Source of the DNA: Phaeosaccion multiseriatum
Taxonomy: Eukaryota > Protista > Ochrophyta, other classes
DNA length: 64,000 bases
Direction: 5' to 3'
Assembly: GCA_965112735.1 (NCBI GenBank)
Contig: OZ218963.1
Span: forward strand, 2,604,001-2,668,000
This document shows, piece after piece, positions 1-36,268 of this stretch (positions are counted from its first letter, which is position 1; every line of letters starts with the position of its first letter). The translations under genes and the position numbers were made by a program. The notes under the pieces are model-generated. The model saw only the letters and a list, made by a program, of their open reading frames with translations. It had not been told where the DNA came from and made no database searches.

Positions 1-1
1 T

Positions 2-5053: not shown

Positions 5054-5091
5054 GGGAGCTGGCGGAAGAGGCGGGGGTGTAGTGAGGGGGA

Positions 5092-5286
5092 TGTTAGAAG
5101 TGGCCTAGTTGGGGTCCCTTGGGGACCCAATCAGGGGTGTAACGGCCGGAAAACGGGCCAACGAGACGGTAAATCAGTAATAAAGAAAGGAAGCGCAGCC
5201 TGCGTGTGGGCTGGCTTCCGGGTGCTTGCTTCAGCTTCTGCTCTGCTCTAGCTTGGCTTTGAGGCTAGCTGTCGGTAGTTTCGACA
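5092..5286 (+). repeat. Exo-Gypsy 3' LTR (195 bp), preceded by a purine-rich PPT
   Basis: TGTTAGAAGT...AGTTTCGACA follows GAGGGGGA. Near-identical copies at 12013-12207, 43586-43780, 45482-45676 and 47404-47598. Confidence 0.9.
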
Positions 5287-5424
5287 CAGACGTGCCCGCA
5301 GTTCGTGGACCCATGCCGAGGCAGACGAAAACGACCCGTCCTCCACTAGCGCCGGAAGCATCGCCTGTAGAGGCACCGGGGGGTGCCGACCGAACAAGGC
5401 GTAGAATGGCGCCATCCCCGTGCC
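5287..5424 (-). mobile_element. Inverted fragment of an Exo-Gypsy integrase region (probable target of the copy 1 insertion)
   Basis: Reverse complement of about 4056-4192. Confidence 0.8.
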
Positions 5425-5427
5425 TCC

Positions 5428-7296
5428 ACTAGGCCACTTCTAACAGAGGTCAATACTCTGACCACTGCTAATGACTTACTCTCGCACTCTTCCACTGATG
5501 AGGAAATCGCCCACCTTAGTGGCGAGCTGAACGTGTGGGGTGACATGACCTCTCGCTTCCGCTCGGTCCCAGGCTCTGCTACAAAGCCTCTTGATCCTCC
5601 GGAAGACCACACTGTACGCGTGAGTGCCCTCCAACGCACCTTCTCTCCAGGATCAGTGCACGACTCCATGGACAGTGACTTTGAGTGGCCCTCTCTCGAG
5701 GAGATTCGCTCTTCTCAAGCGGCTGCCCAAGGCACGCTCACTCTCGAAGCGCTTGCAGCTCAGCAGCACCTTGCTTCTCTGGAGCATGATGCTGACCTCG
5801 ACGCCATTGTGGTGCCTCAATCGGCGTCTTCACGTCCTTTGTGGATACCCAGTGACGACATTGACCTACAAGTCCGACTCTCTGTCATTGCACATCAAGG
5901 ATCGGCAGGGCATCGCGCTGCCGATACCACTCTCTCCGTTCTCTCGGAACGATTCCACTGGCACACCATTGGTGCCGACCTGACTCGCTTTGTTGACCTC
6001 TGCCTCCATTGCCTCACCAACTCCCATGGGCATCGCATACCTCGCCCTCTTCGCGGTGCGGTCCACCCTACCAAGCCCAATCAGATGATTCATTTCGACT
6101 TCGTCCACATGCATGACTTGGGCTGCACTTCCTTGCCATACCTGTTGGTCATCCAAGATGCCTTCAGTGGTTACACCATGCTCAACGAATGCGCTTCCAC
6201 CACTGCAGACGCAGCTGTCGGTGGATTGATGCGCTGGTTCAGCACATTTGGAGTAGTGAGCAAGTGGCAGAGTGATCGAGGCAGTCACTTCCTCAACCAT
6301 GTGATGAAGCGCCTAGCGACTGAGCTTCGCGCCAAACATCGCTTCTCGGCTCCATACTCTGCTTGGAGTAATGGTCTCGCTGAACGAGCTGTACGCACTG
6401 TCGTTTCAGTCTACCGCTCTCTCCTCTCTGAGTTTCGCATTGACGCGGACGACTACAATCTGATCACACGCTCTGGTCCAAGCTGCCATCAACACCACGA
6501 TCAGCTCGACCCGCAAAGAGACTCCACTCTTTCTGCACACTGGCCTACGTTCGACGACTCCACTTGATATCGTCTTGCAACAGGGCGACAGCTTCGATGT
6601 TGACTTCCAATCTTCGCCGCCAACTCTTGAACAGCTCAACCACTATGGTGCTCAGCTGCAAGCGGTTCTTGAAGTTGCTGCTCAACTTGAGCGCTCGCGG
6701 GCGACGGCTCGCGACCGTCACAATCGTCGTCTGGACACTACTCGTCTTGGACATCAACACCGCAAGGAGCTGGCTCTCTCGGCGGCCCTCAACTACGAAG
6801 GCCTCTACATGCCGGGCATCTATGTCCTTGTCGCTTCCAAGAGCCGCTACTCCAAGCTCTCTGGAGTCTGGCAAGGCCCTATAAAGTGCTGGAGGAGATT
6901 GACACTCTGGTCTACAAAGTGCAACATCTTGTCTCGAAGCAAACCTCTGAAGTGCACGCTTGCCGCTTGCGCTACTACGCTGACCAGCATCTCAATGTCA
7001 GTACTGAGCTGCTTAAGCAGATCTCACACGACTCAGCCTCCTGGGTTGTCTCCGCCTTCAAGGACCTACAACGTCCCTCTCAAGGCGCACCCTGGCAGGT
7101 TCACACCTCCTGGAAGGGCTTCAATGCCACCGACGATACTTGGGAACCTTTGACAGTCATGAATGATGACGTTCCTGCTCTCTTAGAGCAATTCCTCTCC
7201 TCTTTCCCTCGTCGTTCTTTGGCGGAGGATGCTAAGCGCTTCCTTCGGTCTCGCGACCCCTCGTCACGCCGACGCCCGCGAGCAGGCCGCCGATAA
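5428..7296 (+). pseudogene. Degenerate Gypsy (clade 2) integrase and chromodomain, frameshifted
   Basis: HQGSAGH..CLHC, IHFDF, WQSDRGSHF and NGLAER; WQGP; chromodomain WKGF..DTWEPL. Split over ORFs 5383-6567, 6575-7153 and 6886-7296. Confidence 0.88.
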
Positions 7297-7411: not shown

Positions 7412-7617
7412 TGTTGCCCCTACAGCCTCATATTCATTGCCTTAGTACGTGTAACTGTCACCATGCCCATATGACATCTTACGTGGCACAATGAGGTGGC
7501 ACACAGCCCACCAGGAGTAGTAGTCTGTGGCGCTCCCTCACTCTTAGCTTATCCACCCTAAAGCTAAAGGAGACTCGGTTCTTTACTAGAGCTGAGGCAA
7601 GGCCTCCAAACTTTACA
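7412..7617 (+). repeat. Putative 3' LTR of the clade 2 Gypsy (right end uncertain)
   Basis: TGTTG begins immediately after the PPT GAGAGGGAAG. Confidence 0.5.
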
Positions 7618-7894
7618 ACCTTGCACCCATCGCTTCAAATATTGGCTCACTTTCCGACTTGCTAGCGATAGCGGGATTGGCTACATTTCGCAACGCTGGT
7701 AAATATAGCCCCCCCTTCTATTGCCCTCTGGGGCCGAGAAGGATAATACTGCGATGCTCTTAGCGCTATTAGCGCTACTGCTGAAGAGAGAGAAGAAAGG
7801 AAAGCTGCACACTGTTCTCGCCAAATGAAAAACAAGGTTTGCATATTTGTCCTTCGCTGCTTCCACCTCGTCCGTGGGTGCAGGCGTGCGAGAC

Positions 7895-10546
7895 CTAATC
7901 GTCCTTCCCCATGAGGGCGGGCCAGGCGGCCTTGAGATAGCCCGATCCCGAAGTCACTGTCAGCACCGTCGACCCCACAAGGAGGTACTGCAGGAGGCAG
8001 GCAGGCAGACAGGTCCATCATCCAGAGAAGAGAGACAAGACAGAGTCAGGCACATCAGAGAGACGGGAGGGAGAAGAGAGACACCAGTGCGGCGCAGCGA
8101 GAGAGGGCTTTCCCATCTCCTATAAACCCGCTGCGCATTACTCATCAGTACTCATGGTGTGGGGCGAGAGTAGCGCTTGCCCCGCGCCATGCTGTTCGTG
8201 TTCTGCCTACTCGCTCATCTCCCCCTTTCTCCAACAAACACACACCTTCGTGGCGGCGAAGCACGACTTGGGGATGATAGTGTTGTCGCAGCCCGGCATC
8301 AGCAAGAGTAGGCCCGTGATGGACACCATGGTGAAAGCAGTCTTGACTTTTCCCGCCATGCCCACCTGCCATGGCAAACCCAGTCAAAGTGGGGTCCATA
8401 GTTACTGGGAGAGGACAGAACGAAGAGGGAGAGCGAGACGAGAGTTCCGAACTCTTCCAAGAAGGGTCATCCCAAAACAGCAAAATCACAGAAGATAATG
8501 ATGGTGATGGTCGCAAAGAAAGAGTCACCCCCTGTTCCATGCGGCGCACCGTCAGTCGCTCACCTTGACGTTGCCCCTCTTGCCGATCTGAGCCATCCAC
8601 TCTCGAAGCGCGCTGATGCCAATTTCCCGAGCGATAATGATGGCGGTGCATGCAGTCATCCAAATGCCGAGTCTCTCCGCGAGCAGGATCAGCGCTGTCG
8701 ACACCATGAGCTGAGGCACGAGGGCAGCAGCAGTCGTCGCATGCAGCAGGACAAGGAAGCACGTAGTACGGGGGTTGGGGTCAGGAGTGAACTTGAGGTA
8801 AAGGTCTAGAGAGTGGAATACGGGCCACCAAAGAGAGAGGAGTGAGTCGCCAAGTAGGAGGCAGATACACGTCCAATCGAGCACCTGCAGCTCGAGAGAT
8901 ATGCCCCCACCTGCAACATTGAACACAATCGACACGACTGTTTCGTACCTTGTCAGCGACTGGATCCAGAAAGGCACCAAAGGCACTGACAATGTTGTAT
9001 TTCCTCGCCCACCAGCCATCGACATAGTCCGTGATGGCTGCCAGAGCAAAGATGGTCGCCGCCACCACATTCCGGGAGGGGATGTCCATGTAGAAGACGC
9101 TGATACACGAACGAAAGTACAGCATACAGCACGGGCCATGGGCTGGGGTCAGGGGAAACATACGCACGCCCTTAGACAACAGCAGCGGCAAAGAGGAGCC
9201 ACGAGGTAGGCACCCCGTGGGTGAGAAACAGCCCCCAGAGGCCCTGAGGGCCTCACACAGCAAGAGCGGGAAGGGCAACTTTCCCGACGAGGTTCGAGAG
9301 AATAAGATAGGGACTCGGAATGTGTGGTGTAGGACACTCCCACCTCCCCTAAACTGACCCCGGCCACCAGGTCTAATGTTTGAAATGCCGCAGCAGGCCT
9401 GACATCAAAAGGGACTCACGTGGCGAAGACCGGGATGGAGGCCAGGCGCAGGAGAGAGAGCACGTTCGGCACGTTCCATAAGGGCGCCTTCTCCGGCGAC
9501 AATTCAATTGAAGACACCGACTCGGGCCCCAGTCCTGTGGAGGTGACGTGCGACTGCTGCTGGAGAGGGCGGCGACGCAGCACGGGAAGCGGAGCGATAA
9601 GGGAGTAGCAGCTACGGTTTAGAGAGTACACAGGTAAGAAACCCGCACAACTGGGCAACAAAATACGATGGACAACCGCAGCTCAAAGCCCTCAGGGATG
9701 GAAAACCAGGGACCCCCCTCCGCATGGACAGGACACCGCTACTCTAGTGTACTGGGGGATCCGACACGCCCTGCCAAGATGATCTCTACCCACCTCTGCC
9801 GCAGGCCCCCCGCCCTGGGGCCCATCGTCGCGGCTATCTATACCCCCCGCCAGTGCGACGCCTAATGCCCCTCCTCTGAGCCCCGTCAGGCACAGACTTC
9901 CCTGGACACCTCCGCCTGCTCCGGCTCCTGCTTGTGCTCCCGCTGACTTTACCCAAGCACCCGTCTGTGCAGTGGAAGCATTCACACATTGCCATTGTCT
10001 TTTCAAGCGAGTGAAATGGTACACACGTGTGCCCAATAGCTAAATATCCTACACACCGAGAGAGGGAGATCTAAAAGAAATGTATCCTACAAACAGGGAG
10101 AAGAAGAGCTTTTTTCCCCGGTCTTTCCTGTTCCAAGCTTTAGTTCCCCTCTCTCACCAGAGAATACCGACTGCCCCCGCGCCCTCGAAGGCCCAACCCG
10201 CCTCCTCCCACTTCTGTTGCTCCAACGTGAAAGGCAGGAGTTGCGCTGAAGCCGCAAACGCTGTAGCCGCAAACGCCGTAGCACAGCGCAAAAAGAGTTG
10301 ACCTGAAGGAGAGGGCGAGGGGGAGGCTTAAACAAGCAACATTAACGTGACTTAAACAGGACATCAACTGCAGCAACAGCAGAGAGAGGTTTGCATGCAG
10401 GAGCGAAGTCCGACTCACGCGAGGAGAACGAGTTGCTGTTGCTGTTTTCTTCTCCTGCTCAAGCAGTGCTGCTTGTGGCGTGGCTGGCCGCTCAAAGTGC
10501 CCAATCTCCGAAAGCCGCAAAAGAAATTACTCCTGTTTTCTTCCAT
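7895..10546 (-). CDS. pgsA: CDP-diacylglycerol--glycerol-3-phosphate 3-phosphatidyltransferase (PGP synthase), spliced. Predicted exons: 10546-10419, 10302-10168, 9611-9420, 9099-8949, 8710-8564, 8365-8246, 7987-7895
   Basis: Phase-consistent GT-AG introns join LWNVPNVLSLLR, TDYVDGWWAR..FGAFLDPVADKL (CDP-alcohol phosphotransferase motif), IIAREIGISALRE, GKVKTAFTMVSI and YLLVGSTVLTVTSGSGYL..stop. The two 5' exons give a hydrophobic signal plus a GF/AF motif and are less certain. Confidence 0.88.
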
Positions 10547-11192
10547 TTTTCTTCACATCAGGGTCGGGGGCGGCGCGCCCATCAGGCCTCAAAAAGAGCG
10601 CAGATGTCGACTCTACATGGGTTGGTGATACACCCCCCCCTCTTTTCAGCTTTTCAGTCCACTACGTCCTGACACCTAGTACTACCCATGCCTTCCCCTC
10701 GAGCGCTCTCTCGCTCGGTCAGGCTAACTGCTAATACTTGTAATTGTTTATATTGTGTAAGGGGGGGTAAATGCGATTTCCAGGGGGTGCCAAAGCAGGG
10801 CAGGCAGACGCGTCTGCCTCGCCCTTACTCCCATCCACCCCGTTGGATTCCCGATAATCCCACTCGTCCCCCCGGGCCGGGCGGGTGGGGAAACTTTCGC
10901 TGTCGCTGCCGTCTCCTTCGCGCGGTGGACTGCTGGGCTGCTCCGCCCCTTCGCTGTCCTTCTCACCGCGCTGAGCTCTTCGGCACTTGCTACAACTCTT
11001 GCGACGCTGTGCTCGCGTCGCCTCCTCTTTTCACAGTTGTGACTGCTAAATTCTTGCTATACCCCGGTGGGGTGGGCGTCTTACGTGTCGAACGGGCCGC
11101 TAGGCCCCTTGCGTCGGTCGGCGCGGCGTACCCTTGCCTTCAACCATTTCTTGACTGTAACACTGTAACTGCCTATCCTCCCCGTGTTAAGC

Positions 11193-12012
11193 TGTGCCCA
11201 CAAGCTCTACAAAGGGTTTAGAGAATACTCCACAGGCTTTGTGCCAATGTGTGAAGCCTCCTATTATAATCTTGTAGCCTGCTCGTCGAGCGAGGTACCT
11301 TGTTGAATAAAAGAAAAGAAAGTGGAAGTCCAAAGGACATTCCAGAAAAGGGGTCCTGACACCAATACTGACATAGCCCTATTTTAACCCCGGGCAAGTA
11401 TCAATATCGACCTAGACCCAGACAGCACACTGCCTCCAAGGCGAGCTCGGGAGGGACTACCCTCAAGACTAAGCTTTACGTACAGCATCCTCAATGTCGT
11501 GAACGCGCAGCTCTCTTGCGTACCTTCTTCGTCGGCGGTCCTGAGCCTCGAGACAGAAACTCCCGAGCTCGACTGACAAGCTCCTGGTCTGGGAAGTTCT
11601 TAAGAAAGGTCTCCAAAAGGACAGGCACATCAGCCGCAAGCGTACGGATGGGCTCCATGCTGTTCTCCTCCGGCTCAAAGCCAACCCACTGAACTTGGAC
11701 GAGAAAGTCGCCACCCTCATCCTCGACGAGGTCGACGAATCTCTCCACAGTCCACAAGGGAGTGTCGTACTGGATCTGGGCGAGTGCGTCAGTGCTGACA
11801 CCAACACTCGCATCACAATAGTAGCGTAGCCGTGAAGCATGATCAGTGAAGCGCCTCTTCTTGCCAATCAGCTCCTCCACTTCATATACCATGGGGCTCA
11901 CCTCACAGATCACTCTGTAGGGCCCACTCCACACTCCACGCAGCTTGCTATGGGCCGAAACGTTGGCCATATTGACAAAGACACCAGGAACGAAGACGCC
12001 AGTGTGACCAAG
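11193..12012 (-). mobile_element. 3' remnant of a clade 2 Gypsy: GPY and chromodomain ORF (11491-11970), PPT, and an LTR starting at 11429 (far end uncertain)
   Basis: WSGPYRV and QWVGF..NSMEP motifs; GGAGGCAG followed by TGTGC on the minus strand. Confidence 0.75.
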
Positions 12013-14073
12013 TGTCGAAACTACCGACAGCTAGCCTCAAAGCCAAGCTAGAGCAGAGCAGGAGCTGAAGCAAGCACCCGGAAGCCAGCCCACACGCAGG
12101 CTGCGCTTCCTTTCTTTTATTACTGATTTACCGTCTGTTGGCCCGTTTTCCGGCCGTTACACTACTGATTGGGTCCCCAAGGGACCCCAACTAGGCCACT
12201 TCTAACATCCCCCTCACTACACCCCCGCCTCTTCCGCCAGCTCCCTCAGAAGCCGAGATGCGAGCGATAGAATTGCGTCTCGTGCGCCAGCCCGCTGCCC
12301 CACTTCTCATGTTGCCGCAGACGGATCGTGCTTTCCCGTTTAGACCTATGCCCTCTTTTGAAATTCACTCCTGGATCAAGGGCAGTGTGCGGAAGGGCGT
12401 TCTCGAACGCCTCTATGGCCTTGGCGTGTCCCCGCTCCAGTAACCACTCAGCCCATTCCCAGGTCTGGAAAGTGCCGCCGTCCGACACGGCCCACCGCAC
12501 GTTATACTCTCGCCGCAGTGGCAGCCCCGTGGCTTTGCGCCAGCGGAACTTCACAATCCTCGCCAGCGTGGGCACTTTCCCCTCACTCACCTCGTCCAGC
12601 TCTAAGCTACGCTGCTCCTGCATTGCGCTGGTAGCCCACTGAGGAGAGCACCAACGGATATGATACCTGGCGAACCCTTCCGGGAGACCGAAGGGCCGCT
12701 CGCTCACCCCATCGATGAACGGCTTCGTCAAATCTCTGTGGTACGCCCGTTGCAGCTGCTCCACACCATTGCCGCGCACCCGTTTCATAGACAGATACAC
12801 TGCGCTGCGCTGCATGACCTGATAGTGCTCTTCACTCACCCGCCCATGCTGAGCACAGTAGGCCCCCAGAGATGGCCAAGGCAAGACTGTATAAGGACCA
12901 TCCCACGAGTGCTGCAGAGCCTTGAGTTGCGCTGACGGGGGCCCTTCGAGTTCTTCCCCTTCTTGCTGGGCGGCGGCACCAGGACGATACAACATCACCT
13001 TGGTTCCGGGTCGCAGGGGCGTCGGCCAACGGCGTGAGGCGTTCTTCAGCTGCAATCTCCCGTGGTAGTCGCAGCGCCTCCCATTTACCACCGCCGCAGC
13101 CGCAGCCAGACGTGCCCGCAGTTCGTGGACCCATGCCGAGGCAGACGAAAACGACCCGTCCTCCACTAGCGCCGGAAGCATCGCCTGTAGAGGCACCGGG
13201 GGGTGCCGACCGAACAAGGCGTAGAATGGCGCCATCCCCGTGCTCTCCTGCGAGCGGCAGTTGTACGCATAGGTGAGCCCGGCGACGTAATCTGGCCACT
13301 GCTGCATCTGTGACTCCACGGTCGTCGCCAACATGTCCTTGATCGTGGCCATGAAGCGCTCCACCTGCCCATTGGCCTGTTGGTGCATCGGCGTCGTGAA
13401 CACTTGCGACGCCGATAGAACCCGCATCACATCGCCCATGAGCGCACTGGTGAACTGCGAGCCTTGATCACTCACCAGCACTCGGGGCACACCCAGGGTG
13501 GTGACGACATGCCGCACGAAGGCCCGAGCAATACCTTCCGCCGTATAGTCCTGTGCCCTCAAAGGCACCACCACTGTCCACTTCGTGAACCAATCCTGAA
13601 ACACCAAGAGGTACTCCTCACCGCCCATGCCCATAGGAAAGGGGCCAGCCACATCAGCGCCCATGACCGCCCAAGGTCCATCCACCTTGGAAATGGACGA
13701 CAGCGGCACAGGCTTTGGCTGCCGGCGAGGAGTCTTGCGTGTCTGGCACGCCAGACAGGAGCGGGCCCAATACAGCGCATGTGCATTCATCTTCTCCCAC
13801 CATACGCGCTCTTGCAGCGCGTCTAGCATACGTCCCGGGCCTTGGTGCCCACCTGCGATGGCATCGGTGTGGGCGGCATGCAGCAAGGCTGGCCGCATCT
13901 CCTTGGGCACACATACTTGTAGCCGAGTGTGCCGCACCCGCCACCGAAAGCCCCCAGGAGCCCACTTACGCATCAAGAGCCCGTCCTCATCCACAAAGAA
14001 CTCACCCCCACCTGCATCCACCACGCCGCCGGTGGGCCCAACCTGAACACGGCGACGGAGTGCTTCCAGCTCC

Positions 14074-15137
14074 TGTTAGAAGTCGTACTTTTGCTAGACT
14101 GATACCTGCCCTCTGAATTCAGACCGGGAGGTATCAGTCTAGCAAAAGTACGACTTCTAACAAGACCGTTGCTAGAAGACGAACCCCCCCCCCCACCGCA
14201 CGTAGTGGAGAGAAGTAACTCGCAGTCTGAGAATCAGCATCATGGGCCAGCAAGCTGGTAACAGTTTTCGCCGAAAAATACGCTTTTCAGAGGGCAGGTA
14301 TCAGTCTAGCAAAAGTACGACTTCTAACAAGGCTAGTTGTGAGTTCGAACCTTAGCTGTCGCTTGTGAAAAAGCGTATTTTTCGGCGAAAACTGTTACCA
14401 GCTTGCTGGCCCATGATGCTGATTCTCAGACTGCGAGTTACTTCTCTCCACTATGTGCGGTGGGGGGGGGGGGGTCGTCTTCTAGCAACGGTCTTGTTAG
14501 AAGTCGTACTTTTGCTAGACTGACACCTCCCGGTCTGAATTCAGAGGGCAGGTATCACTCGCTAGTTGTGAGTTCGAACCCTAGCTGTCGCTTGTGAAAA
14601 AGCGTATTTTTCGGCGAAAACTGTTACCAGCTTGCTGGCCCATGATGCTGATTCTCAGACTGCGAGTTACTTCTCTCCACTATGTGCGGTGGGGGGGGGT
14701 GTTACGACGCGTTTGGATAATACTGAAGGCATATTGGGATGCCTTATATCGTAACAAAAGAGGGGTTCGAGTCCTACCTGAGGAAAGAGAAAAAAAAAAT
14801 AATATGATGTTTCCCGAGGGGGGTTCCCAAGGAGATACCAGAGGGTCGTACCCTGTTGAAAAAAGCACGTGAAAACTGGTGGGATAAACAAAGGGACAGT
14901 ATTTAGGGACGAACGTGTCGGTAGCGCCAACCCCCCGGTGCGAAGGTGTAGGGCTCAAGGAACCCACCTAGGCGTTTGGATAATACTGAAGGCATATTGG
15001 GATGCCTTATATCGTAACAGGGGGGGGTTCGTCTTCTAGCAACGGTCTTGTTAGAAGTCGTACTTTTGCTAGACTGATACCTCCCGGTCTGAATTCAGAG
15101 GGCAGGTATCAGTCTAGCAAAAGTACGACTTCTAACA
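14074..15137. mobile_element. Hairpin-terminal mini-element family A, head-to-head composite, TSD CTCC
   Basis: 89-bp palindromic TG..CA repeat at both ends in inverted orientation. CTCC at 14070-14073 and 15138-15141; the empty site is visible near 52089. Confidence 0.9.
14700..15019 (+). mobile_element. TRIM-like mini-element family D (57-bp repeat TGTTACGA..TCGTAACA), nested in the G-run of element A
   Basis: Direct repeats 14700-14756 and 14972-15019. B-box GGTTCGAGTCC at 14764-14774. Flanked by G runs (GGGG TSD compatible). Confidence 0.75.
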
Positions 15138-18100
15138 CTCCGCATCAGCCCGCTGCGCACGCACCCACCACGCGGCCTCGACATGCAGACTGCCACCCAA
15201 AGCTCCAGCCGCTCGTCTGTGCGCCGCGGCAGCAGGCACCGTGCCTGGTAGAGACCACCCAAACTGTCGCTCTGCCTCTCGTCGATGCCCATCAAGCTCG
15301 CGCTGCAAGGTGGACTCCTGCTCCACCGGCTCCTTGGAAACTGAATCCACTGCATCCTCAGCTTCATTATCCACTGCATCCGCAGCTTCATTACCTGCAT
15401 CCCCCGCTTCTTCCGTGACCAGTAGATCTGCCGTACCAGGCTCCGACGGCGACTCCGCAGCAGGCGGCTCCCCAGGGGGGGTGATGCGGCCCTCCTCCGT
15501 AACAAGCTCCTCACCCTCGGTGGCACCAGCAACGGCAGCTGGACACACCTCCGCGGGCAGACGAGACGCATCCTCCTCAAGCTCGGCCTCCCATGCAGCC
15601 CACGCATGAGCGGCCGCGGCACCCGTTTGCTGAGCCTCCGCTGGTGTGCACATCGAGAAGTAGTCACGCGACACCTGACGGACTTGCTTCCATGGCAACT
15701 CGATCATGGTATCTAGGTGACTGGCCAACGCGCCCACCACCTTCCGCTGGCGCTTATATGTCCGCGTGAACCGCTCCACCATCTGCATCATTGTCTCCCA
15801 CGAGCACTGCAGTTTGAATTGCAGTTTGGCCAGGTCGAATACCTCCAACGTCTTGGAGTGGACACCAAAGATGTAGAGCGGTGATACGTGGTCGCGATCG
15901 CCCCAATAACCAACCGCGGCCTGCATGAACCTGCCGACTTGCATCTCCTCCTGCTCCGCAGGGGTGTGAGCAGGGCTCATCGCGCTAAGCTCCACCCCCG
16001 GGCCACCATAAACGAACGGCACACACTCCGCCATGCGAGGCCAGAGGCGGAGGAGCGCCGCAGCGTCAGCAAACGCGTACTCCCGTTGAGCGGCGGACAG
16101 CGGCCGCTTCGTCCAGTCGGTGGCCCGCTCCTCCTTGCTAAGGTGTTGCTCCAAAAACATGCTGACAAGGTCCTGGAGTCCGATGAACTGAGTATGTTCG
16201 GGGCACACGCGCTTAAAGAGGTCACTGGTGTCCACCAAGTTGACGATGTGCTGGACATGCTCCGCGAGCTCCGGCCATCGGCCCAGGGCACGTTGGTCGT
16301 GACTCCAGTGGTGAGCCAGCTTCACAATCGAGGGTTCGGCCCACAGGTCCCGCAACGCTTGCGCCAGTACCATCATACCCCCCGCCTTCTGAAGCGCGTC
16401 TAGATCAATCAAGAGCCCATAGTCACGCGCCACATCCGGCAGCGGCCCAACCTGCACGGCCAATTGCAGCAGCGACGCGCGCCGTCGGTGACGCGCCCAC
16501 TCCGAATCCATAGCGACCACTTTGGCTGTGCGCAACTGAGTCGATAGAGCCTGCAAGTGCCTCGGCGTAGACACGTACGTGCACCTCGCTGCGGAAATGT
16601 GGCTCACAAATGGCGACATCTGACCCCGCTGCCAGGCGTCTATCACCGCCTTCTTCACACCCAGCTGAGGTGCTCGCGTAGGCTGCCATCCACATTGCTG
16701 GAGACGCTGTGTCCAAGCACGCCGAGCAGTACCCCTGCGTGACTGCGTCGCCGCCAAGTCCACCTCTGCAGTCTGCCAGGCTTGTAGGGCCTCCGCTCCG
16801 CTCTGCTGCTGGTGGTGGCACCGTTGCTGCTGTTGCTGGGCCGTCACGGCAGGCACAGGAATAGGAAGGCGTGTGTCGGCTTCGCCCTGCAGCTGTTGCG
16901 CCACTGCGAGAAAGCGAAGCAGTGCGCCCTCCGTGGGCTCCTCCCAATGAAGGCTGCACTCGTCCCCTACCATCTCCACCAGGTTCAACTGCACCCCCAT
17001 CGAAGCACACCAGGTGTGCAAGGGCGACGGCCACTCGCACGCAACCATGGCCAAGTCTACCCCCGCATGCGTCTCCCACTCCTGCACCGGAAGCGCGTTG
17101 CGAGAGAGGCAGTCAGGCACCACCATTTGCTTCCCGGGACGATGCACAAACTGCAAGTGGTGCGTAGAGAGCCGCTCGTACCATCTGAACAGCTTGGAAT
17201 TGGTATCCTTGTGCCCAGCCAACCACAACAAGGGCTGATGGTCCGTCACCACTGTGGTGGGGTAGTGGCAGATGTACATGGCCAGTTTACGCACACACCA
17301 CACCACTGCCAGCAGCTCTAGCTCCGTGCTGCTCAGTCGCGCCTCCGTCTCCGTGGTAGCCCGACTGATGAACGTCACCACACGCTCCTCCCCGGTCGCA
17401 TCGTTCTGAGAGAGCACTCCTGCTAACCCTTCCGTCGAGGCATCGGTGCTCAGGGTGAAAGTCGTCGCTGGCCCGTACTCCGGAAAAGCCAGTGCAGGGA
17501 AAGACAACAAGTCGGCAACGAGTCCATCCCAAGCTGCATCGTGCGAGGCATTCCAGGCGCGGTGCTCACGTCGACGCCCTTACGCAGCAGCCCATTGAGA
17601 GGCCGCACTTTGCGCGCAAACTCCGGAATGAAACGGCGAAAGTAGCTGAGCATGCCAATGAAACGCCGCACCTGCTTAACTCGATTGACGCCGCCATCCT
17701 TCGCAAGCAACCTCAACGGCTTGACCAGCTCTTGCACCGCCGCATGCTTGGCCGGGTCTGTGCGCACCCCATTCTGATCCAGCAAATGCCCGCAGAACCG
17801 CACCTCCGGTGCACCCAATACAGCCTTACTCGGCTCCAACTTGAGCTTGTGCTCCACCAACCGCGCAAGCACAGCATCCAAATGCTCCAGATGCTGCTCA
17901 ACCGTAGCCGAAAACACAGCAATATCGTCCACAAAGCATGCCACATGCTCCTGAAGCCCCTTGAGCACCTTATTCATAAGCCGCACAAAGACTGCAGGCG
18001 CATTCTTCGCGCCCTGCGGCATCACTCGCCAAGCGTAAGTACCACTGTGGCACACAAAGGTGGATATGTCCTCTTCCGCTGCTGATGCCATCGGCACATT

Positions 18101-21100
18101 GAAGTAGCCCGACATGATGTCCATCACCGAGAACACCTTGGAGCCATGCATCTCTGCCAGCAGATCATCAATCACCGGCATCGCAGGGGCCTCCGTGCGA
18201 CACGCATCATTCAGCTGAGACAAGTCACACGTCATACGTACCACAGGCGTCCCATCCTCATGACACTTGGTTTTGCCAGCTGCGTCCGTCTTCAAGACCG
18301 CCATCAGCGGAGTGGCCCAGCTGGAAGTGCTGGGGCGAATGATGGCAGCCGCGAGAAGCTTGTCAATCTCAATTTCAATCCCCCGCCGCAAATGGGGAGG
18401 ATACCGTCGAGCGGAGCTCCGAATGGGCTGCTGATTCGCATCCTTCAGTCCCCACTCAAAGAAGAGAGTATCCGTCCGACCGTAGTCACCAGGCCTCTGA
18501 CAGAATGCTTGCGACCGAGCGCGAAGGATCGCCACCAGTCCCCAGCGTTGCACCTCCGTCCAGGCACCGTCGCCAATCGTGATAGCGTGCAGGGGCGACG
18601 GTAGCTCCCTGAGCCAGAACTGAGCCCGCTCCGTAGTGAGCTTGGCACGGCGCCGCTGCTCCACCACAAGCTCTCCTGCATCCCACGACTCCACTCCACC
18701 ACCAAGACAGCGACTCTCCTGCAGCACCGCTCGCAATTGGATAAGGAGCAGCAGCGCATTGGTCATATCCTGCTCCACCTTCTCCTGCTGCTGTAATGGG
18801 CGACTAGACCACAACGACAAGAGCTGTTGGGCCCATGCGGCCACAGCAACGTCCCCAACGCCGCTCAGACCCGTGCCAGCGGCTTGGTGTACATGGGGGC
18901 GCAGGAGCAGTAGCGCGGTCACAGCCCCTTCCTCTGCCGCAACCAAGCACTCGCGCAGACGTCCATACACTCGCTCTGACAGGTGAGGATACCACTCCTT
19001 GATCAACTGCACTCCTGCCATCAGAGTCCCACCGGACGTGTCACTCTGGCTACCGAGTCGCAAGGCACCATCCGCATCCAGTACCCACCCATCACCGCGT
19101 AGGTCAGTCAATGATGTGCCCACCGCCGCCGACGATGAACCTGCCTCGGACCGTAGTGGCGGTTCCTCCGACGCCACTGACGATGCCGCCCCTGGCGCAG
19201 GCCTGCTGGTGGAATCATCAGCCACCGCCACGTGGTGGACCTGCAGTGGGCCTGTACGAGGCGGTCGGAGCTCCTGCAACTGTGTCTGACGGCGTCGCGC
19301 TACCGCCGCCGGAGCCACCTGCTGCTGTACCGCATTGGACCGCTGAACCTGCTGAGCTGCCGACGAATCCGCTCGCTTAAAGAGCTCTTCCCGCTGGGCC
19401 TTGTGCCGTCGCTGCAATGCCCACTGGCGTTGCTGCCGTGCCTGCTGCTGTGCCGCTTGTAACCGCTTGGCCTGCTGCGTTGCCAACCATGCTGCTGTCT
19501 CCTCCTTCGAGTCCACTCGTGGTGTGTCAGCTCGTCTGGCCGGCACTCGCACTGTCCCCCCCCAGGAGGACGCCAAGGGCACTCGACGCTCCCGCGGCAC
19601 CGGTCGTTGCCCCAAGTCGCTCCCCCAAGCGAGACGAAGCCCTCGGTGATGCCAGGCGCAGGAGCCGTCAGCGCACAGCTCCCGTCGCAGCGGCAAAACT
19701 TGTCGTCGCACTTGCTCATGGCGCTCCAACACTGCTTGCCGATGAACCTGGTCCCACAGCACAGGAGACTCCACAAGCATTGATGCCACTCTCCGACGTT
19801 GCCGCTGCAACCGCCCAGCACCCACTCGACTCTGCCGACACTGACTCCCCTTCTTGCCGCTGCGCTGCAAATGCTGAAACCGGGCCTTCACTGCCGGCTG
19901 AGGCACCAGAGTCGATGGCACCCCCACCTCAGTCCGTGGGTGCGTCAGGGCCTGCACCTGCACAGCTTGCAGCGGAAGCGCCGTAGCCCCCAGCTCAGCC
20001 TCCTCTGGTACCACCGAGCAGCGAACTACAGGCCCCTGCGGTGGGTACCAGACCGGCTCAGCTCCTGCTTCAGATTCAGCCGGCTGCGGCGACGCCTCCT
20101 CCTCCACCACAGACTCAACCGCCTCCCGCGCCTTGGACCATGGCAGCCTGCGCTTCATCACACGCCTCACCATCCCGCCAAGAACACCAAGCCAGGAGGA
20201 GGGGGCCGCTGCAGTCTCCGGCACGGTATCTGAAGAAGCCGGCTCAGCGAGCATGAGCGCGGCCACCTCAGCGCTCGCCTCCGAGTCGAGCAAGCAAGAA
20301 GCCGTGCCGATGACCTGCCCAGGAACGACCACAATGACCTGATTGTGGTGGTTCTGCACTGTGATTCGGTAACTCTGCCCCCCAGCATACACACCATCTT
20401 TGTGCGCCACTAGAACCTGCTCGTGCTCCAGCCACCATAGAACGTCCGTCTCTGCCGCCAAGTGTCCGTGAGCGCCCAGCTCCACCACCGCCTGGACACC
20501 CTCAACGATACCCGTAAGCTCGAGGAGAAGGGACCCCGTCTGTCCAGGTCCCAAGCTCAAAGCCTCCACAGCACGTACCCCCCCAACAGCAGCGTTTGCC
20601 GTCCACCACTGCCAGCACTTGCACAGCCAAGGCATCGGACGGACGAGCATCCGACGTGGCCTCCTCCGAAGGAGTCGGAAGTACGTAGAGCTGCTTCGCA
20701 CGATGATCGACGTGTGCTAAAGCTACGAACAGTACAGACCGCTCAGGGGTTTGGGCTAATATATGCCGCGTCTGTTGCGACGTCGGTGCCCGTATTGATA
20801 GTCTCTTTACTGCCCGCTGCTTCAAGCGTGGTCTCTTGTCTTGTACTTGGCAGTCTACAGGTCCCTTCGTTGCCACCTGGCACTTTCGGGACTCTCAGGT
20901 ACGTTGAGGCGGGAACTCTCTTTAGGACCGTTCTTATTTCTATAACCCCAGAACGTCCACCCGGAAACCGCAGGCGAGATGGTCCCTTATCACACTACCC
21001 CCAAGCGACAGTCCGAGTCACTCGAGTGCTATAGTACCTGGTGTCTACTACTTTCGTTTCTTCTTGGAACCACTGTCGCGTGATCCGCGTCTCTTGCGGG

Positions 21101-22482
21101 TCGCTGACTGTGCTCTCTGTGTTGACTGCTTGTCTGCAATCCCTTTGAGGTAGGCTCGGACTGCGCTGACTTTCTGCTTGTCCGGGTGACCATCCAGGTA
21201 TTGATTGAACTGCCTGGGGATGTCTGCCATCATAACCTCCACTGGCTCTTCGCTGTTCTCCAGCACCTCGAACCCTTTCCACTTGACTAACACATGCCAT
21301 GTGTCGTCAGCGTGTTGTACTACCCCCAGAAACTTGTCTACAACAAAGTCTCGTGTGGTGTACGAAATCTGCTTCAGTACCTCCGTCGTGAGACCGACAT
21401 CAGCGTCACAATAGTACCTCAGCCTGCTGATGTGAGCATCAAAGACTCGCTTCTTGCCCACTAGCTCCTCAACACGTCCATCACCTCGTTCAAGAAGTGA
21501 TCACCTCTATCACTCATCCACCGCTGGACGATTCCATGCTGCGCGAACCATCGCAGCAGAGCACGATTCCATGCTGCGCGAACCATCGCAGCAGAGCACG
21601 GGCACGTCCCTTCGCAGTAGCTTCATAGCACGGCTCGTACATCGTCAGAGACGAGAAGTCATCCACTGTACTCGCACGAATCAATCGGTCGTCGCCAGCT
21701 CGCCCGGAATGTGCTCAATGGTGTCATCAAAGAGCTCACGGGCTCCACCTTGGCAGATGGATCTGGGCACAACAGCTTGTTGCGCCACACACGATGCTTC
21801 AAAAGAGCCTTCATCATCGGCTCTCTCAACTTGGCGGGGAAGTCATTCTCCCTCACCGTTCTGTCTACTTCACCCCTTAACCGACTGCGCAGCTCCTCCA
21901 TATAGGGTGCCTGCCCAGCTTCGAGGCTGTTGGATGAAATCAATGACACTGTCATACTTGTCCACTACTTCATTAGTTACTTGGTGAGAGCCTATCGCTC
22001 CCACCCTCGGGACTTCTGTGTCACTCACCACCGGGAAGAGGTCATCCTCCGGCAGTGTAGGGCTCTCGGAATGGAAGCTCATCACTCGCGCGGCGCTCGA
22101 ACCGTAAGGCTCTTGCTCCTTCTCTACAAGGGCGCGCCCACGCTCAGCCTCCAACACCTCCTCAACCCTCTTGACATTGAACTTCTGTCGTCACTGTCGC
22201 ATACGGCATCTCAAACTCTAAGTGAACGCCCATCACCGCTTGGCTGGTCTCTGCCAAGCCGTTGGCGGTCTTGACCGTAACAGGCTCACACGCCTTTATC
22301 CTGGCCCTTAGCTTCTCCACACAGAGCTTCGCAATCTCCGGTGTGGTGCAAGCCGCAAAGTCATTCCCACTATCCCATATGAAAGGTATCCTCATGAGGG
22401 CAGGTACTTCCACCATCTCCGGCTCTGTCTCGCCTCGAATGGTCACAGCGCCTCGATCACCTACTGTGTTCACGGCCACTGT

Positions 22483-23586
22483 CTAGTCCGAAAACTCCTC
22501 TACTGAGGCAGTCCTTGGACGATTGCCAGGGGTTAGCTTCTGCTTCCAAATAGCCTTCTTCTGGGCTCTAGTGGTTGTTTTGCAATCGCTCAAGCCATGT
22601 CCAGGCTTTCCACACCCAAAGCACAATCGGCCAGAGCTCTCTTGGTCTGAGGCACTGCCTCCACCCTTGGCTCCCGACTCTTCCCCTTCCTTGGCACTAC
22701 CACTGACCTGAGTGTCAGCGGCCTTGGCAGCTGCAGTATCACTGTTCGGCTGCTGCCGCAACGCGTGGTAATCTTCACCTCTCTTGCGTTTCTTGTCATG
22801 GCGACGTGGTTCACGCACCGAATCTTGCTTTCTGTCCTCTTCTCCTCCTTCTTCTCCTCCTGCACCCCCGTTGAGCTTGTTCGTTTTGGCTCCAGGGAAG
22901 ACTGCTGAGAGAGGAAGATTGATACTACGGACCATGGCGCGTGTCTCATGAAACTTAGTCATGACTTCCACCACCGCTTTGAACCAACCACTACAGTCTT
23001 TGTGCCAGTCCGTCGGCCTAGACTGCTCGTGGTTCACTACTACTGCATGCATGCCGACATCAGCACGCTTGATCACTGTCTTGAAAGCAATCATCGCAGC
23101 CTTGGCAGTAGCTCCTGATTGGGGCTTGCCGTAACCATCATCTTTTGTCTCAACGTCCCACTCCATGGATTTGAACAGAGGGGTTTTCTTCGCTCGGAGC
23201 AGAAACTCCGCATGCGAGTACTTAATGGCCTCCAAAAGCTCTCCACTCGTCAACTTGTCGCTGATGTTCAGCTGCACAGACTGAGCAATGCCCTTCCATG
23301 TGACCTCGCCCTTTTGCCCGGAGGTCTTGATGAAATTCTCCAAGTAACCAAGGATATCTTCGCTCGTCAAGTTGACCTCTGTCTTACCCCAGAACGCAGC
23401 AATCTGAGCCCGCAGGACCTCATCCACCAGCGTACTCATTGCTGGGATACGGCTTGCTTGGTTGATACCCTTCATGCGAGCTTTTCCAGCTTTCCAGTTG
23501 TAGACGAAATCCTGAACATTGTCCGCTCTCAGAGCCCCTTCCAACTTCTTGAACTCCGACAATACCGTGTTGGTGGAGTCCACCAT
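22483..23586 (-). CDS. gag: Gag with CCHC zinc knuckle
   Basis: 367-aa ORF containing CFGCGKPGHGLSDC, directly followed by the protease ORF. Confidence 0.85.
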   Translation of the reverse strand: MVDSTNTVLSEFKKLEGALRADNVQDFVYNWKAGKARMKGINQASRIPAMSTLVDEVLRAQIAAFWGKTEVNLTSEDILGYLENFIKTSGQKGEVTWKGIAQSVQLNISDKLTSGELLEAIKYSHAEFLLRAKKTPLFKSMEWDVETKDDGYGKPQSGATAKAAMIAFKTVIKRADVGMHAVVVNHEQSRPTDWHKDCSGWFKAVVEVMTKFHETRAMVRSINLPLSAVFPGAKTNKLNGGAGGEEGGEEDRKQDSVREPRRHDKKRKRGEDYHALRQQPNSDTAAAKAADTQVSGSAKEGEESGAKGGGSASDQESSGRLCFGCGKPGHGLSDCKTTTRAQKKAIWKQKLTPGNRPRTASVEEFSD

Positions 23587-23967
23587 GTTGCTCTCTTCTC
23601 TCTCGCTGCTGCGAAGCCTCCGCTGATATCTCCCGCAGATTGCTCCGCTGCTGCGAAAACTTCACACTCACGCCTTGTAAAATGCGAGAACTAGTTCTGT
23701 GCTAAAGCTACGAACAGTACAGACCGCTCAGGGGTTTGGGCTAATATATGCCGCGTCTGTTGCGACGTCGGTGCCCGTATTGATAGTCTCTTTACTGCCC
23801 GCTGCTTCAAGCGTGGTCTCTTGTCTTGTACTTGGCAGTCTACAGGTCCCTTCGTTGCCACCTGGCACTTTCGGGACTCTCAGGTACGTTGAGGCGGGAA
23901 CTCTCTTTAGGACCGTTCTTATTTCTATAACCCCAGAACGTCCACCCGGAAACCCCAGGCGAGATGG

Positions 23968-26511: not shown

Positions 26512-26632
26512 GATGGTCCCTTATCACAGACGAATGCCCCTACTTGAGTGAAGAAATCCTGCCCCAAGAAGATGGGCCGCGCCAAGTGGTCCACCACATG
26601 AAAGGGTAGCACCGGCTGGCACGTCGGCGTGA

Positions 26633-27617: not shown

Positions 27618-28149
27618 TGTTAGAAGTCGTGCTTTTGCTAGACTGGTACCTCCCGGTCTGAATTCAGAGGGTAGGTGTAAGAAGGCATCCTTTTGCTAGG
27701 CTGGCAGCTACCCCCGTGAATATTCAGTGGATAGCTGCCAGCCTAGCAAAAGGATGCCTTCTTACATGTCTGTCAGTTAAGGTCGATCCTTCCCCCCCCT
27801 CCGAAAACTCCTCCGAACACCTTGGGGGGGTTACTACCTAGGATTTCTCCCACACCGAGCCCGTGCATTTCAGTGTCATGCCCAACTTTCGCCCTCGGAA
27901 ATTTTCTCACCATCCACAGAATCGAACCCCGTCTGGGCATGTAAGAAGGCATCATTTTGCTAGGCTGGCAGCTATCCACTGAATATTCACGGGGGTAGCT
28001 GCCAGCCTAGCAAAAGGATGCCTTCTTACATAGGTACCAGTCTAGCAAAAGCACGACTTCTAACATAATATTCAGTGGATAGCTGCCAGCCTAGCAAAAG
28101 GATGCCTTCTTACATAGGTACCAGTCTAGCAAAAGCACGACTTCTAACA
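27618..28149. mobile_element. Family A hairpin containing a complete family B element (27676-28030, TSD TAGG), followed by a partial duplication (28067-28149)
   Basis: TAGG on both sides of B; the A arms can be rejoined across it. Confidence 0.88.
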
Positions 28150-29111: not shown

Positions 29112-29713
29112 TTTCCCTGAACCCTCCAAGTTTTTTTCCAATGTTTCCAATTTGCTACTTTTCCTCTTTTGCACCTTCCCCAAGTGCTGTTTTGAACTGA
29201 AATTGACAGTAAGCTAATAGATTCGTGGAGGTCTAAGCACGACTTTCCACACTTTTCTTCTGTCCCTGTACATATTTTTGTAGCGATATATAAGGAGTCA
29301 TTAGCTCGCTGTAAACCATTCAGCGCGCTAGAGTTTCCGACCCCACCTGTACTGTGAGACCAGACACGGCCCAATTCTCAGTCAATATGGGCATTGGCAT
29401 GCATGATACTGAGGGAGACGTTGTCGGCAAAACACTTGAATATAATAAAGGATTGTCGGCGCAGCCATGTGTCAAGCGAATCTGGACATGCTCTACTTTC
29501 CCTTAAACCTGCTAGTACCTGATTAAAGTATATACCCGCCGCCACCCAATGTCAATGTCGGCTCGCCTCAGACCGTTCCGCACGGCCCTTGCATTTCTAT
29601 TGATTGGGTCCCCAAGAGACCCCAACTAGGCCACTTCTAACAATTAAATAATTGTGCCCTTCCCAGCTCCACCACATGTCACTTATACACCTTACACATG
29701 CACGCCGACCACC

Positions 29714-35185: not shown

Positions 35186-35354
35186 TCGTTATCATATCAC
35201 GACCAGCTGCCTCAGTAGAATATCTCTGGGGGTGTTAGTGTTATCAGATCAATCGAATATCTTATCACATACCTTGACAAGGAATCCAAATCTTATCACA
35301 AATCACTCATAGTCGTGATAATTGTCGTGATATGATTTTATTGTTGTCTTTTAA

Positions 35355-36194: not shown

Positions 36195-36268
36195 TTAAAA
36201 TAAAACAGCCAAACAGCTGGCCAAAACCGCCAAACAGCTGTGTCAGCCGAGGTCGGGCCTCATTTTAG

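Follow-up and report, generated by a model that had tools for sequence, protein, structure and literature searches.

The stretch of DNA analysed here, referred to as the window, comprises 64,000 nucleotides of contig OZ218963.1 of Phaeosaccion multiseriatum. Between positions 12012 and 26632, on the minus strand, it carries the second copy of Exo-Gypsy, an element with a Ty3/gypsy pol and an added 3'-5' exonuclease domain. This copy has lost its 5' part, has been hit by three transposable element insertions and contains at least one frame break. It hosts a single insertion at 14074-15137, flanked by an exact 4-bp TSD (CTCC; left copy at 14070-14073, right copy at 15138-15141). The uninterrupted target site, with one CTCC, is present in Exo-Gypsy copies 1 and 3, and because of these two paralogous empty sites the insertion boundaries and the TSD are known exactly. 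The insertion opens with a family A terminal hairpin of 89 bp (14074-14162, centre orientation 'a'). The original prediction had claimed perfect arms of 34 bp for this hairpin; they are present and enclose a 12-nt central palindrome, the whole forming an 89-nt near-palindrome with TGT...ACA ends. Folded as single-stranded DNA, the hairpin reaches -42.6 kcal/mol (z = -16.6), a value equalled by none of 200 shuffles.

Behind this hairpin lies an internal region, inverted and truncated (14163-14285, minus strand), which is 98-99% complementary to 14369-14472 and 14598-14703. The following parts are on the plus strand: a right half hairpin (14286-14329), a first direct copy of the internal region (14330-14494) with a conserved 10-nt motif at 14342-14351 and a G-run near its 3' end, a hairpin in orientation 'b' whose right arm is truncated by a deletion between short CTAG repeats (14495-14560), a second direct copy as far as the G-run (14561-14699, 99% identical to 14332-14470), a nested 320-bp family C element within the G-run (14700-15019), and the rest of the second copy, that is, G-run plus 21 nt (15020-15048). 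The closing terminal hairpin (15049-15137, orientation 'b') is the exact reverse complement of the first, and the outer 118 nt of the two ends show 100% inverted identity. The same end therefore faces outward on both sides, next to the CTCC duplication, as had been proposed, and the empty sites agree. The inversion junction had also been placed correctly: at about 14286 the truncated inverted region meets the half hairpin, which begins 1-2 nt from the hairpin centre. In the composite, an inverted double copy of a family A unit is combined with a tandem repeat, a deletion and the nested element. The term 'inverted dimer' holds for the TSD-flanked inverted double copy, but the truncations, the tandem part and the nested element mean that the dimer is not a clean one.

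A family A unit consists of a hairpin, about 165 bp of non-coding DNA and a second hairpin. The two repeats of a unit are near identical, and the window holds few young copies. About 18 places in the window carry hairpins, which fall into two diverged subfamilies and show compensated changes. A monomer lies in Exo-Gypsy copy 3 (56772-57390, plus strand, TSD TGAC), with both centres in orientation 'b', a deletion in the left hairpin that begins at its centre, and a nested 303-bp TG..CA solo-LTR-like insert (56901-57203, TSD CCAG). A solo hairpin of the variant A2 lies in a partial copy of another element, E36 (46245-46335, TSD AACA). The earlier claim that these two forms also carry 4-bp TSDs is confirmed by empty paralogous sites, against which both duplications are exact. 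Further A2 sequences comprise a partial copy (46552-46943, plus strand) that starts with half a hairpin from the centre and continues with an internal region, a full hairpin with a 6-nt bulge and a 5'-truncated hairpin; a solo hairpin without recognisable TSD (36269-36357); and a hairpin without TSD that a family B insertion has split and next to which the junction is partly duplicated (27618-28149). In each of the four family A units the asymmetric (bulged) centres point the same way (direct orientation), as LTRs would, an arrangement that may simply descend from a single master copy.

Three sister families, B, C and D, are built on the same plan. The B monomer inside the A2 hairpin (27676-28030, minus strand, TSD TAGG) has 91-bp hairpins whose centres are inverted relative to each other, and its repeats are identical at 90 of 91 positions as an inverted repeat, not as a direct one. 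A second B insertion is composite (59178-60293, TSD CTAT): five hairpins separate four internal regions of alternating orientation, one of them truncated, with a single shared hairpin per junction. Overall, the B centres are of mixed orientation. The D element (35544-35803, plus strand, TSD CCCC) has a 66-bp hairpin with 21-nt perfect arms, a 172-bp internal region and a right hairpin reduced to the left arm, and the C element nested at 14700-15019 has a 57-bp, partly palindromic left terminal repeat, a 48-nt direct repeat and TGT..ACA ends. In this sample of about ten insertion events from one window, all readable TSDs are of 4 bp (CTCC, TGAC and AACA in A, TAGG and CTAT in B, CCCC in D; that of C is ambiguous). 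Inverted multimers flanked by TSDs thus occur in two families, at 14074-15137 in A and at 59178-60293 in B, and for this reason they were most likely integrated as units. This fits the part of the original prediction that made any end a valid integrase substrate.

The palindromes are maintained across families through changes on both arms. Across 14 distinct copies, the 34 pairs of the hairpin arms are 98.9% paired, and 8 of these pairs differ on both arms between A1, A2 and B. The 10-nt motif lies 6-20 nt inside one hairpin in all four families; 15 of its 16 matches in the window are in this position, where 1.56 are expected. It resembles a B box or T-loop, as a tRNA-derived SINE or a Pol III-driven (Cassandra-like) TRIM might carry, and one half of a long-range stem explains it at least as well. 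Indeed, the first and last 40 nt or so of the internal region are complementary to each other. Shuffles did as well in 0 of 300 cases for C, 0 of 300 for D, 8 of 300 for A1 and 23 of 300 for A2, and the complementarity was not significant in B; covariation between A and B is seen in these ends. The same strand folds better in nine of nine copies, and transitions that give G.U pairs on that strand outnumber the opposite kind by 23 to 9. This asymmetry hints at a constraint at the RNA level. Part of it, however, is due to composition (the G-run), the p value is only 0.02, and A1 and A2 do not count as independent families.

Neither a tRNA-type (TGG) PBS next to the family A repeats, on either strand, nor a canonical PPT abutting a repeat could be found, in agreement with what had been noted before. 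Families A and B do share a conserved G-run of 8-13 nt, though at a distance of 19-25 nt from the hairpin. ARAGORN detected no tRNA gene in the window and hence none with which to compare a PBS; the same result speaks against a tRNA gene or tRNA-derived SINE, and the T-loop-like motif has no matching stem. Rfam returned no family at gathering score and no 5S match, and a ribozyme, a retrozyme or a Penelope-like repeat with a hammerhead in the terminal repeat was set aside accordingly; at a relaxed threshold only generic hairpin (microRNA-precursor) matches appeared, below the cut-off. Pfam scans of the long ORFs showed no replication-initiator endonuclease. Short stretches taken directly from the window sequence served as search patterns for further copies, and gave no match in metagenome contigs (two patterns), viral contigs (one) or prokaryote genome contigs (one).

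The window also contains several LTR elements with which family A can be compared. The 196-bp 3' LTR of Exo-Gypsy copy 1 lies at 5092-5287 (plus strand). As predicted, the first 10 nt of the hairpin are the first 10 nt of the Exo-Gypsy LTR, at 10 of 10 positions in all five LTR copies in the window. Only the U3-side end matches the hairpin terminus; the other LTR end differs. E36 (36520-39126, plus strand, TSD CAAT; second copy at 48656-51279, TSD TTGT) has two 213-bp LTRs around one ORF of 430 aa, for which no gag homology could be detected. The match between the variant arm and the LTR end of this gag-like element was borne out, as an 11-nt stretch in register (positions 7-17). Over the 17 terminal positions the A2 arm agrees with E36 at 14 and with Exo-Gypsy at 11. 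Thus, E36, which has no pol, matches the variant arm as well as or better than Exo-Gypsy. E20 (20713-26528, minus strand, TSD GACG) is a terminal-repeat element with a zinc-knuckle ORF, within which a Copia-like element, E24, is nested (23968-26511, 5-bp TSD GATGG). Both E36 and E20 are bona fide LTR elements with the same TSD length and TGT..ACA ends as family A. A GGGGA adjoins the repeat in Exo-Gypsy and in E36, and family A has no abutting PPT. The original prediction had named Exo-Gypsy as the likely helper. One LTR end, over 10 nt, speaks for this, but the other end and the PPT do not, and E36 matches the arm as well or better; Exo-Gypsy is a plausible candidate for the helper of family A. 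The window holds no Exo-Gypsy copy with both ends, and hence none with a readable TSD or PBS.

We rejected an origin of the internal region in the LTR of Exo-Gypsy or E36, as local alignments were no better than shuffles. Similarity of internal regions to the 3' UTR of a chromovirus-like element and E20 is marginal (for A, 13-32 of 500 shuffles were as good; for a single match of C, 2 of 500). The ORFs of E36 and E20 show no similarity to the N-terminal ORF of Exo-Gypsy. In protein searches, the exonuclease region of Exo-Gypsy alone found no match, and the polyprotein found matches of at best 38% identity, with the exonuclease domain listed for none of them. Among 1.84 billion representatives the best matches reached 33-41%, and the four top ones contained no exonuclease domain when scanned. 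The exact look-up of one ORF gave no match.

At 43585-45676 lies a 2.1-kb palindrome with unrelated flanks and no TSD. Each arm consists of 740 bp of the Exo-Gypsy 3' end and one family A unit, and the outer ends on both sides are exact Exo-Gypsy LTR termini. The axis falls at the hairpin centre, where there is a 16-nt A+T filler (44623-44638). The arms contain an inverted repeat of 915 nt at 99%; over 1040 nt, 15 substitutions and 2 gaps separate them. A minus-strand cDNA folding back on itself at the nested hairpin should have just this geometry, which supports snap-back during reverse transcription. Altogether, five rearrangement junctions in the 64-kb window lie at or a few nt from a hairpin centre: those at about 14286, at the filler at 44623-44638, at 46552, in the left-hairpin deletion of the monomer at 56772 and, in family B, at 28066.

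Our preferred reading, which we put forward tentatively and at a little under an even chance, is that families A to D are miniature non-autonomous LTR-type (TRIM-like) elements mobilised by a Ty3/gypsy-type integrase, and that their hairpins provoke snap-back into inverted multimers that are still substrates for integration. Two short terminal repeats, each a hairpin palindrome, would flank about 165-215 bp. An integrase supplied in trans by a resident element would cut at the terminal CA and make a 4-bp staggered cut in the target; since each repeat is its own reverse complement, all hairpin ends would look alike to this enzyme. We infer that the intermediate is RNA, and the complementary segments beside both hairpins probably bring this single-stranded form's ends into contact. 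A single-stranded copy ending in a hairpin could fold back and prime on itself, which would yield inverted double copies sharing one hairpin. Such double copies would keep two valid ends and could be integrated as units, as at 14074-15137. In its favour we count the exact insertions with 4-bp TSDs, the TSD length and termini shared with the neighbouring LTR elements, the direct orientation of the family A centres, the maintained palindromes and common plan of the four families, the strand asymmetry, the TSD-flanked multimers and the geometry of the 2.1-kb palindrome. Several points count against this reading. The centres of the B unit at 27676-28030 are inverted, when the two LTRs of a freshly made pair should not differ, and the elements have neither a tRNA-type PBS nor a PPT abutting a repeat. 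Moreover, the palindrome at 43585-45676 has no TSD, and the step from a folded strand to a duplex palindrome is not accounted for. The small number of insertion events (about ten, in one window) and the lack of matches in the contig collections searched weigh on the same side.

Hairpin-primed replication is a style known from parvoviruses. A further reading would make the hairpins the origin of DNA synthesis as well, with hairpin-primed (rolling-hairpin-like) copying of a single-stranded intermediate followed by insertion through a retroviral-type integrase. Each arm would therefore be templated by the other, the asymmetric centre would flip, and concatemers of alternating orientation would be normal intermediates. 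The parvoviral style would then be coupled, in a transposon of a eukaryote, with integration of the retroelement type. We assign a low probability to this version. A DNA-based alternative is unlikely too, although it is the most serious competitor: the families could be MITE-like deletion derivatives of a cut-and-paste DNA transposon with an integrase-related (Ginger-like) transposase. If TIR hairpins hold two opposed binding sites, any two outward arms become usable, which would give solo, monomer and composite forms. The outer arms are indeed perfect inverted repeats, the whole element folds back, and the subterminal regions are degenerate inverted repeats of about 66% identity. The B unit with its 90/91 inverted match and the lack of canonical PBS and PPT point the same way. 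In addition, Ginger1 and Ginger2 encode a transposase that is a homologue of Gypsy integrase and have TIRs of 40-270 bp, TGTNR termini and 4-bp TSDs (PMC2836005), and family A shares the TGTNR-type ends and the TSD length. GingerRoot, by contrast, has a TSD of 6 bp (PMC6839031). Moreover, the targets are CCGG/CCGT for Ginger1 and RTATAY for Ginger2 (PMC2836005), and CTCC, TGAC, AACA, TAGG, CTAT and CCCC fit neither, within a small sample of six TSDs. The termini match resident LTR ends well past TGTNR, and a hairpin inside the terminal repeat has not been described for Ginger. No RT-less integrase gene was found in the window: of the six ORFs that contain rve, four stand next to RT/RNase H, and neighbouring insertions truncate the two others (5383-6567 and 11491-11970), so that none is demonstrably stand-alone. 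Cut-and-paste movement copies no DNA and hence leaves the inverted multimers with single shared hairpins unexplained. Nor would one expect the strand-asymmetric features, the G-run and the G.U excess, if the substrate were double-stranded DNA.

The composite could also have arisen in place, from a simple monomer inserted at 14074 and reshaped by hairpin or cruciform breakage and template switching in the chromosome, without insertion of a dimer. Since only one of the internal copies holds the nested C element, some events at 14074-15137 certainly came later. The clustering of five junctions at or near hairpin centres would suit such a history, as would the truncation at 14560, whose position between short direct repeats is what replication slippage typically leaves. 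On the other hand, an inverted duplication arising in place would normally invert or lose a flank too, and here both flanks are intact and the TSD is perfect. The same TSD-flanked architecture recurs in family B at another locus, and the outer 118-nt arms are 100% identical. We consider this history distinctly improbable as the source of the inverted copy. Long-read data are known to contain artefactual inverted duplications, and the palindromic structures might be assembly artefacts, for instance from fold-back chimeric reads. This explanation is hardly credible in view of the substitutions and gaps that separate the arms of the palindrome at 43585-45676, the many places with hairpins of two diverged subfamilies and their compensated changes, and the exact TSDs with their empty paralogous sites.

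Compared with known systems, families A to D resemble TRIMs in being shorter than 1 kb and non-coding, with two terminal repeats around a short internal domain, in their TG..CA ends and short TSDs of the 4-6-bp class (4 bp where read, in A, B and D), and in their solo repeats, tandem repeat-internal-repeat arrays and presumed dependence on an autonomous partner. However, the repeats of TRIMs measure 100-250 bp and are not palindromes, whereas those described here are hairpins of 57-91 bp kept palindromic by paired changes. TRIMs by definition have a PBS at the start and a PPT at the end, whereas no PBS and no abutting PPT could be seen here, and the TSD-flanked inverted multimers are a further difference. 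In Ty1, cyclisation involves 5'-3' pairing between CYC5 and CYC3. The complementary segments beside the 5' and 3' repeats and the lack of a tRNA-type PBS recall Ty1 and the self-priming Tf1 group, but the pairing here is imperfect and spans 30-40 nt, as opposed to 7-11 nt, and its role is suggested by the sequence. Some TRIMs also have no recognisable PBS, and self-priming LTR elements have been listed (PMC6934838).

A parallel to the multimers comes from viruses. We note three features that families A to D have in common with parvoviruses: identical palindromic termini whose asymmetric centre occurs in both orientations (in family B), alternating concatemers joined by single palindromes, and complementary arms. 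Parvovirus termini are palindromic with an asymmetric centre in flip and flop forms, and rolling-hairpin replication produces concatemers linked through single palindromes. Unlike these viruses, the elements described here are 260-350 bp long, non-coding and integrated with TSDs and TG..CA ends like retroelements, so that by analogy the resemblance would be one of working mode, not of membership.

Families A to D belong to a familiar kind of element, of which they are an unusual form, and they also seed DNA palindromes. If the preferred reading is true, they form a natural case of an LTR-type element whose two ends became the same sequence. They would then bear on the length of LTR end that an integrase needs, on copying without a PBS or PPT, and on transposon hairpins as makers of genomic palindromes and inverted duplications. 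They represent a small superfamily, one that standard tools for finding LTR elements or MITEs would probably put in the wrong class. Finally, TR-GAG elements are LTR elements shorter than 4 kb whose single ORF is GAG (PMC4350172). Family A differs in having no ORF and E36 in an ORF without detectable gag homology, and the likeness is with E20, whose ORF has a CCHC knuckle, and possibly with E36.

The window is made up of nested transposable elements, including three copies of Exo-Gypsy, a Ty3/gypsy element with an added exonuclease domain (copy 1, 1-5287, plus strand; copy 2, 12012-26632, minus strand; copy 3, 47404-48655 plus 51280 to ~59177, minus strand). The composite insertion of family A, a family of non-coding mini-elements, lies at 14074-15137 within copy 2 and is bordered on either side by CTCC. 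Copies 1 and 3 are uninterrupted here and provide empty sites with a single CTCC. Because copy 2 has two, the boundaries of the composite and its 4-bp TSD are exact. Both ends of the composite consist of an 89-bp near-palindrome (TGT...ACA) with perfect arms of 34 nt and a folding energy of -42.6 kcal/mol (z = -16.6), centred on a 12-nt palindrome bordered by an asymmetric 4/5-nt bulge. This bulge orients each hairpin, the left one being "a" and the right one "b". The outermost 118 nt form an inverted repeat of 100% identity. Between the ends, hairpin a is followed by a truncated inverted internal region, a half hairpin that begins 1-2 nt off the hairpin centre, an internal region, a truncated hairpin b (the truncation falling between short CTAG repeats), another internal region, whose G-run holds a nested element of 320 bp, and hairpin b. 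The original prediction had described the composite from sequence, and all its sequence statements are borne out, among them the identity of the hairpin start with the first 10 nt of the Exo-Gypsy LTR and the in-register match of 11 nt to the end of the LTR of E36, the element at 36520-39126.

BLAST with the hairpin revealed about 18 full or partial family A copies in the window, split into subfamilies A1 and A2 (87-92% alike), and no related hairpin was matched in the public collections searched. The basic unit is a hairpin, ~165 bp and a second hairpin, and both centres are directly oriented in the four units of four. Empty-site proof backs three independent TSD-flanked forms: the composite, a monomer at 56772-57390 (TSD TGAC) holding a nested 303-bp TG..CA insert with TSD CCAG, and a solo hairpin at 46245-46335 (TSD AACA). 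Family B follows the same plan with 91-bp hairpins, as a monomer within an A hairpin (27676-28030, TSD TAGG) and as a composite (59178-60293, TSD CTAT) of four internal regions alternating in orientation and five hairpins, neighbours having a single hairpin in common. One monomer snap-back predicts exactly the last three of these hairpins, and the whole composite looks like a tandem of a snap-back dimer. Families C and D, with one copy each, share the A/B design: C (14700-15019) has a partly palindromic left terminal repeat of 57 bp, and D (35544-35803, TSD CCCC) a 66-bp hairpin with 21-nt perfect arms. Wherever readable, TSDs in these families are 4 bp long, and no target sequence preference is visible among those in the window. 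Nearby bona fide LTR elements likewise have 4-bp TSDs (E36, CAAT and TTGT; E20, a terminal-repeat element at 20713-26528 on the minus strand, GACG); that of a Copia-like neighbour is 5 bp.

In a set of 14 distinct hairpins from A1, A2 and B, pairing holds at 98.9% of arm positions, and 8 of 34 pairs are altered on both sides, several through transversion. Palindromy is therefore maintained, through selection or arm-from-arm copying. The internal regions of A and B are homologous and share conserved blocks. A 10-nt motif (e.g., 14342-14351) occurs 16 times in the window where 1.56 matches would be expected, 15 of the occurrences 6-20 nt inside one hairpin of families A-D, and is complementary to the segment directly before the opposite hairpin. 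The two ends of the internal region, ~40 nt each, are complementary to one another in A-D. This end-to-end pairing was equalled by none of 300 shuffles in D (-36.8 kcal/mol) or C (-29.0 kcal/mol), by 8 of 300 in A1 (-30.4 kcal/mol) and by 23 of 300 in A2 (-29.7 kcal/mol), and was not significant against shuffles in B. Its 10-bp core covaries between A and B, and pairing is more stable on the same strand in nine of nine copies. Transitions leaving G.U pairs on that strand number 23, versus 9 of the opposite kind (p = 0.02); A1 and A2 do not count as independent here, and the G-run adds to the excess. At most, these figures hint that the pairing constraint acts on RNA of the better-pairing strand.

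Rearrangement junctions lie at or adjoin hairpin centres in five instances. The most informative structure, a 2.1-kb palindrome at 43585-45676 with arms 98.4% alike, has as its axis a family A hairpin centre plus 16 nt of A+T filler. Its arms each combine one A unit with the final 740 bp of Exo-Gypsy and end precisely at the LTR terminus, and the sequences on either side of the palindrome are unrelated. A chromosomal fold-back offers no reason for the arms to halt at the LTR end. Minus-strand cDNA of an Exo-Gypsy copy carrying a nested A unit could snap back at the hairpin, which would give exactly these bounds; however, no TSD surrounds the palindrome, and the step from folded strand to duplex is left unexplained.

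Our inferences are based on about 10 insertion events in a single window. The use of a retroviral-type integrase is indicated by the TG..CA ends, by TSDs of 4 bp and by termini identical to those of resident LTRs. The likeliest reading, which we hold tentatively, is that the families are TRIM-like, RNA-mediated elements, because they combine direct repeats, strand-asymmetric features, a cDNA-like palindrome and, in two of the families, inverted multimers flanked by TSDs; the inverted forms would arise from snap-back at the hairpins. Against this count a family B unit with inverted centres and the failure to find either a tRNA-type PBS or a PPT directly adjoining the repeat. A derivative of a Ginger-like DNA transposon would agree with the TSD length, the inverted termini and the fold-back shape, but not with known target preferences, the multimers or the strand asymmetry, and we regard such an origin as rather unlikely. 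Rearrangement after insertion certainly played a part: truncations, tandem copy and nested element all came later. Alone, however, it fails to account for the inverted dimers at two loci where the flanks are intact.

Exo-Gypsy had been proposed as the helper of these elements. The 10 shared terminal nucleotides favour this proposal, which stays tentative on several counts. The other LTR end differs, the PPT is not shared, and no Exo-Gypsy PBS or TSD is visible in the window. E36, with 213-bp LTRs and one 430-aa ORF, agrees with the A2 arm at 14 of 17 terminal positions; 30 nt ahead of its 3' LTR it also repeats GGGGAG followed by the initial 11 nt of the LTR of Exo-Gypsy. The conserved internal motif also occurs once upstream of the PPT of another, chromodomain-bearing element. 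One integrase may be common to Exo-Gypsy, E36 and families A-D, and the window does not single out whose.

Several observations concern these neighbours. The second PPT-plus-LTR-start-like motif of E36, 30 nt 5' of its 3' LTR, is seen at 38884, 46355 and 48889, and an E36-related element has the PPT (GGGGA)/LTR-start junction in three tandem copies (47150-47235, minus strand; 36361-36400, plus strand). The stretch 46944-47195 represents, in its empty state, the site into which E36 inserted at 36520-39126 (96-97% identical to 36361-36519 plus 39129-39224); thus, the two loci are segmental duplicates, and each adjoins a family A hairpin, on opposite sides. E20, whose ORF has a CCHC knuckle, and the chromodomain-bearing Gypsy at 60529-64000 have a common LTR and pre-PPT region at 76% identity (60295-60531, minus strand, and 20713-21090), which suggests that E20 is a TR-GAG-like dependant of that Gypsy.

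The Exo-Gypsy polyprotein comprises RT, RNase H, a 3'-5' exonuclease of DNA_pol_A_exo1 type and integrase. Copy 1 is open in a single frame from RT to integrase up to the window's edge; copy 2 lacks its 5' part, is interrupted by three TE insertion events and has one or more frame breaks; copy 3 also has three insertion events, its long pol frame showing no visible break. The 3' LTR measures 196 bp (5092-5287, copy 1), just after a purine run ending GGGGA. No 5' LTR lies within the window, the sole LTR fragment being 42 bp (29601-29642). A 20-nt stretch at 5417-5445 (minus strand) matches the LTR start at 19 of 20 positions, inside another element's integrase frame on the opposite strand. The exonuclease is DEDDy-type and located between RNase H and integrase (polyprotein at 1-5053, plus strand; 12246-20701 and 51168-56747, minus strand), its closest solved relatives being Rrp6, RNase D, Mut-7 and NanoRNase C. 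DnaQ-like exonuclease has been listed among the accessory domains that LTR elements can carry (PMC6338049). Matches to the Gypsy protein include other algae, e.g., the ochrophytes Phaeothamnion and Ectocarpus; with the host gene described below, they make an ochrophyte alga the probable source of the DNA, on weak evidence. The exonuclease domain was listed for none of the polyprotein-search matches and was absent from the four best library matches scanned.

Elsewhere, an 866-bp fold-back element (35342-36207; 607 bp minus a nested family D copy) has arms of ~255 bp, 85-99% complementary in three segments, and ends TGTTG../..AACA, with no recognisable TSD and no second copy in the window. A GGA triplet repeat of ~125 copies (41636-42009) falls within a long plus-strand frame of another RT-bearing element (40835-43624). 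The sole evident host gene encodes a CDP-alcohol phosphatidyltransferase, with exons at 7600-11000 (minus strand), of which that at 8781-9278 (minus strand) has 76% identity to a Chrysoparadoxa australica protein, the best named relative.
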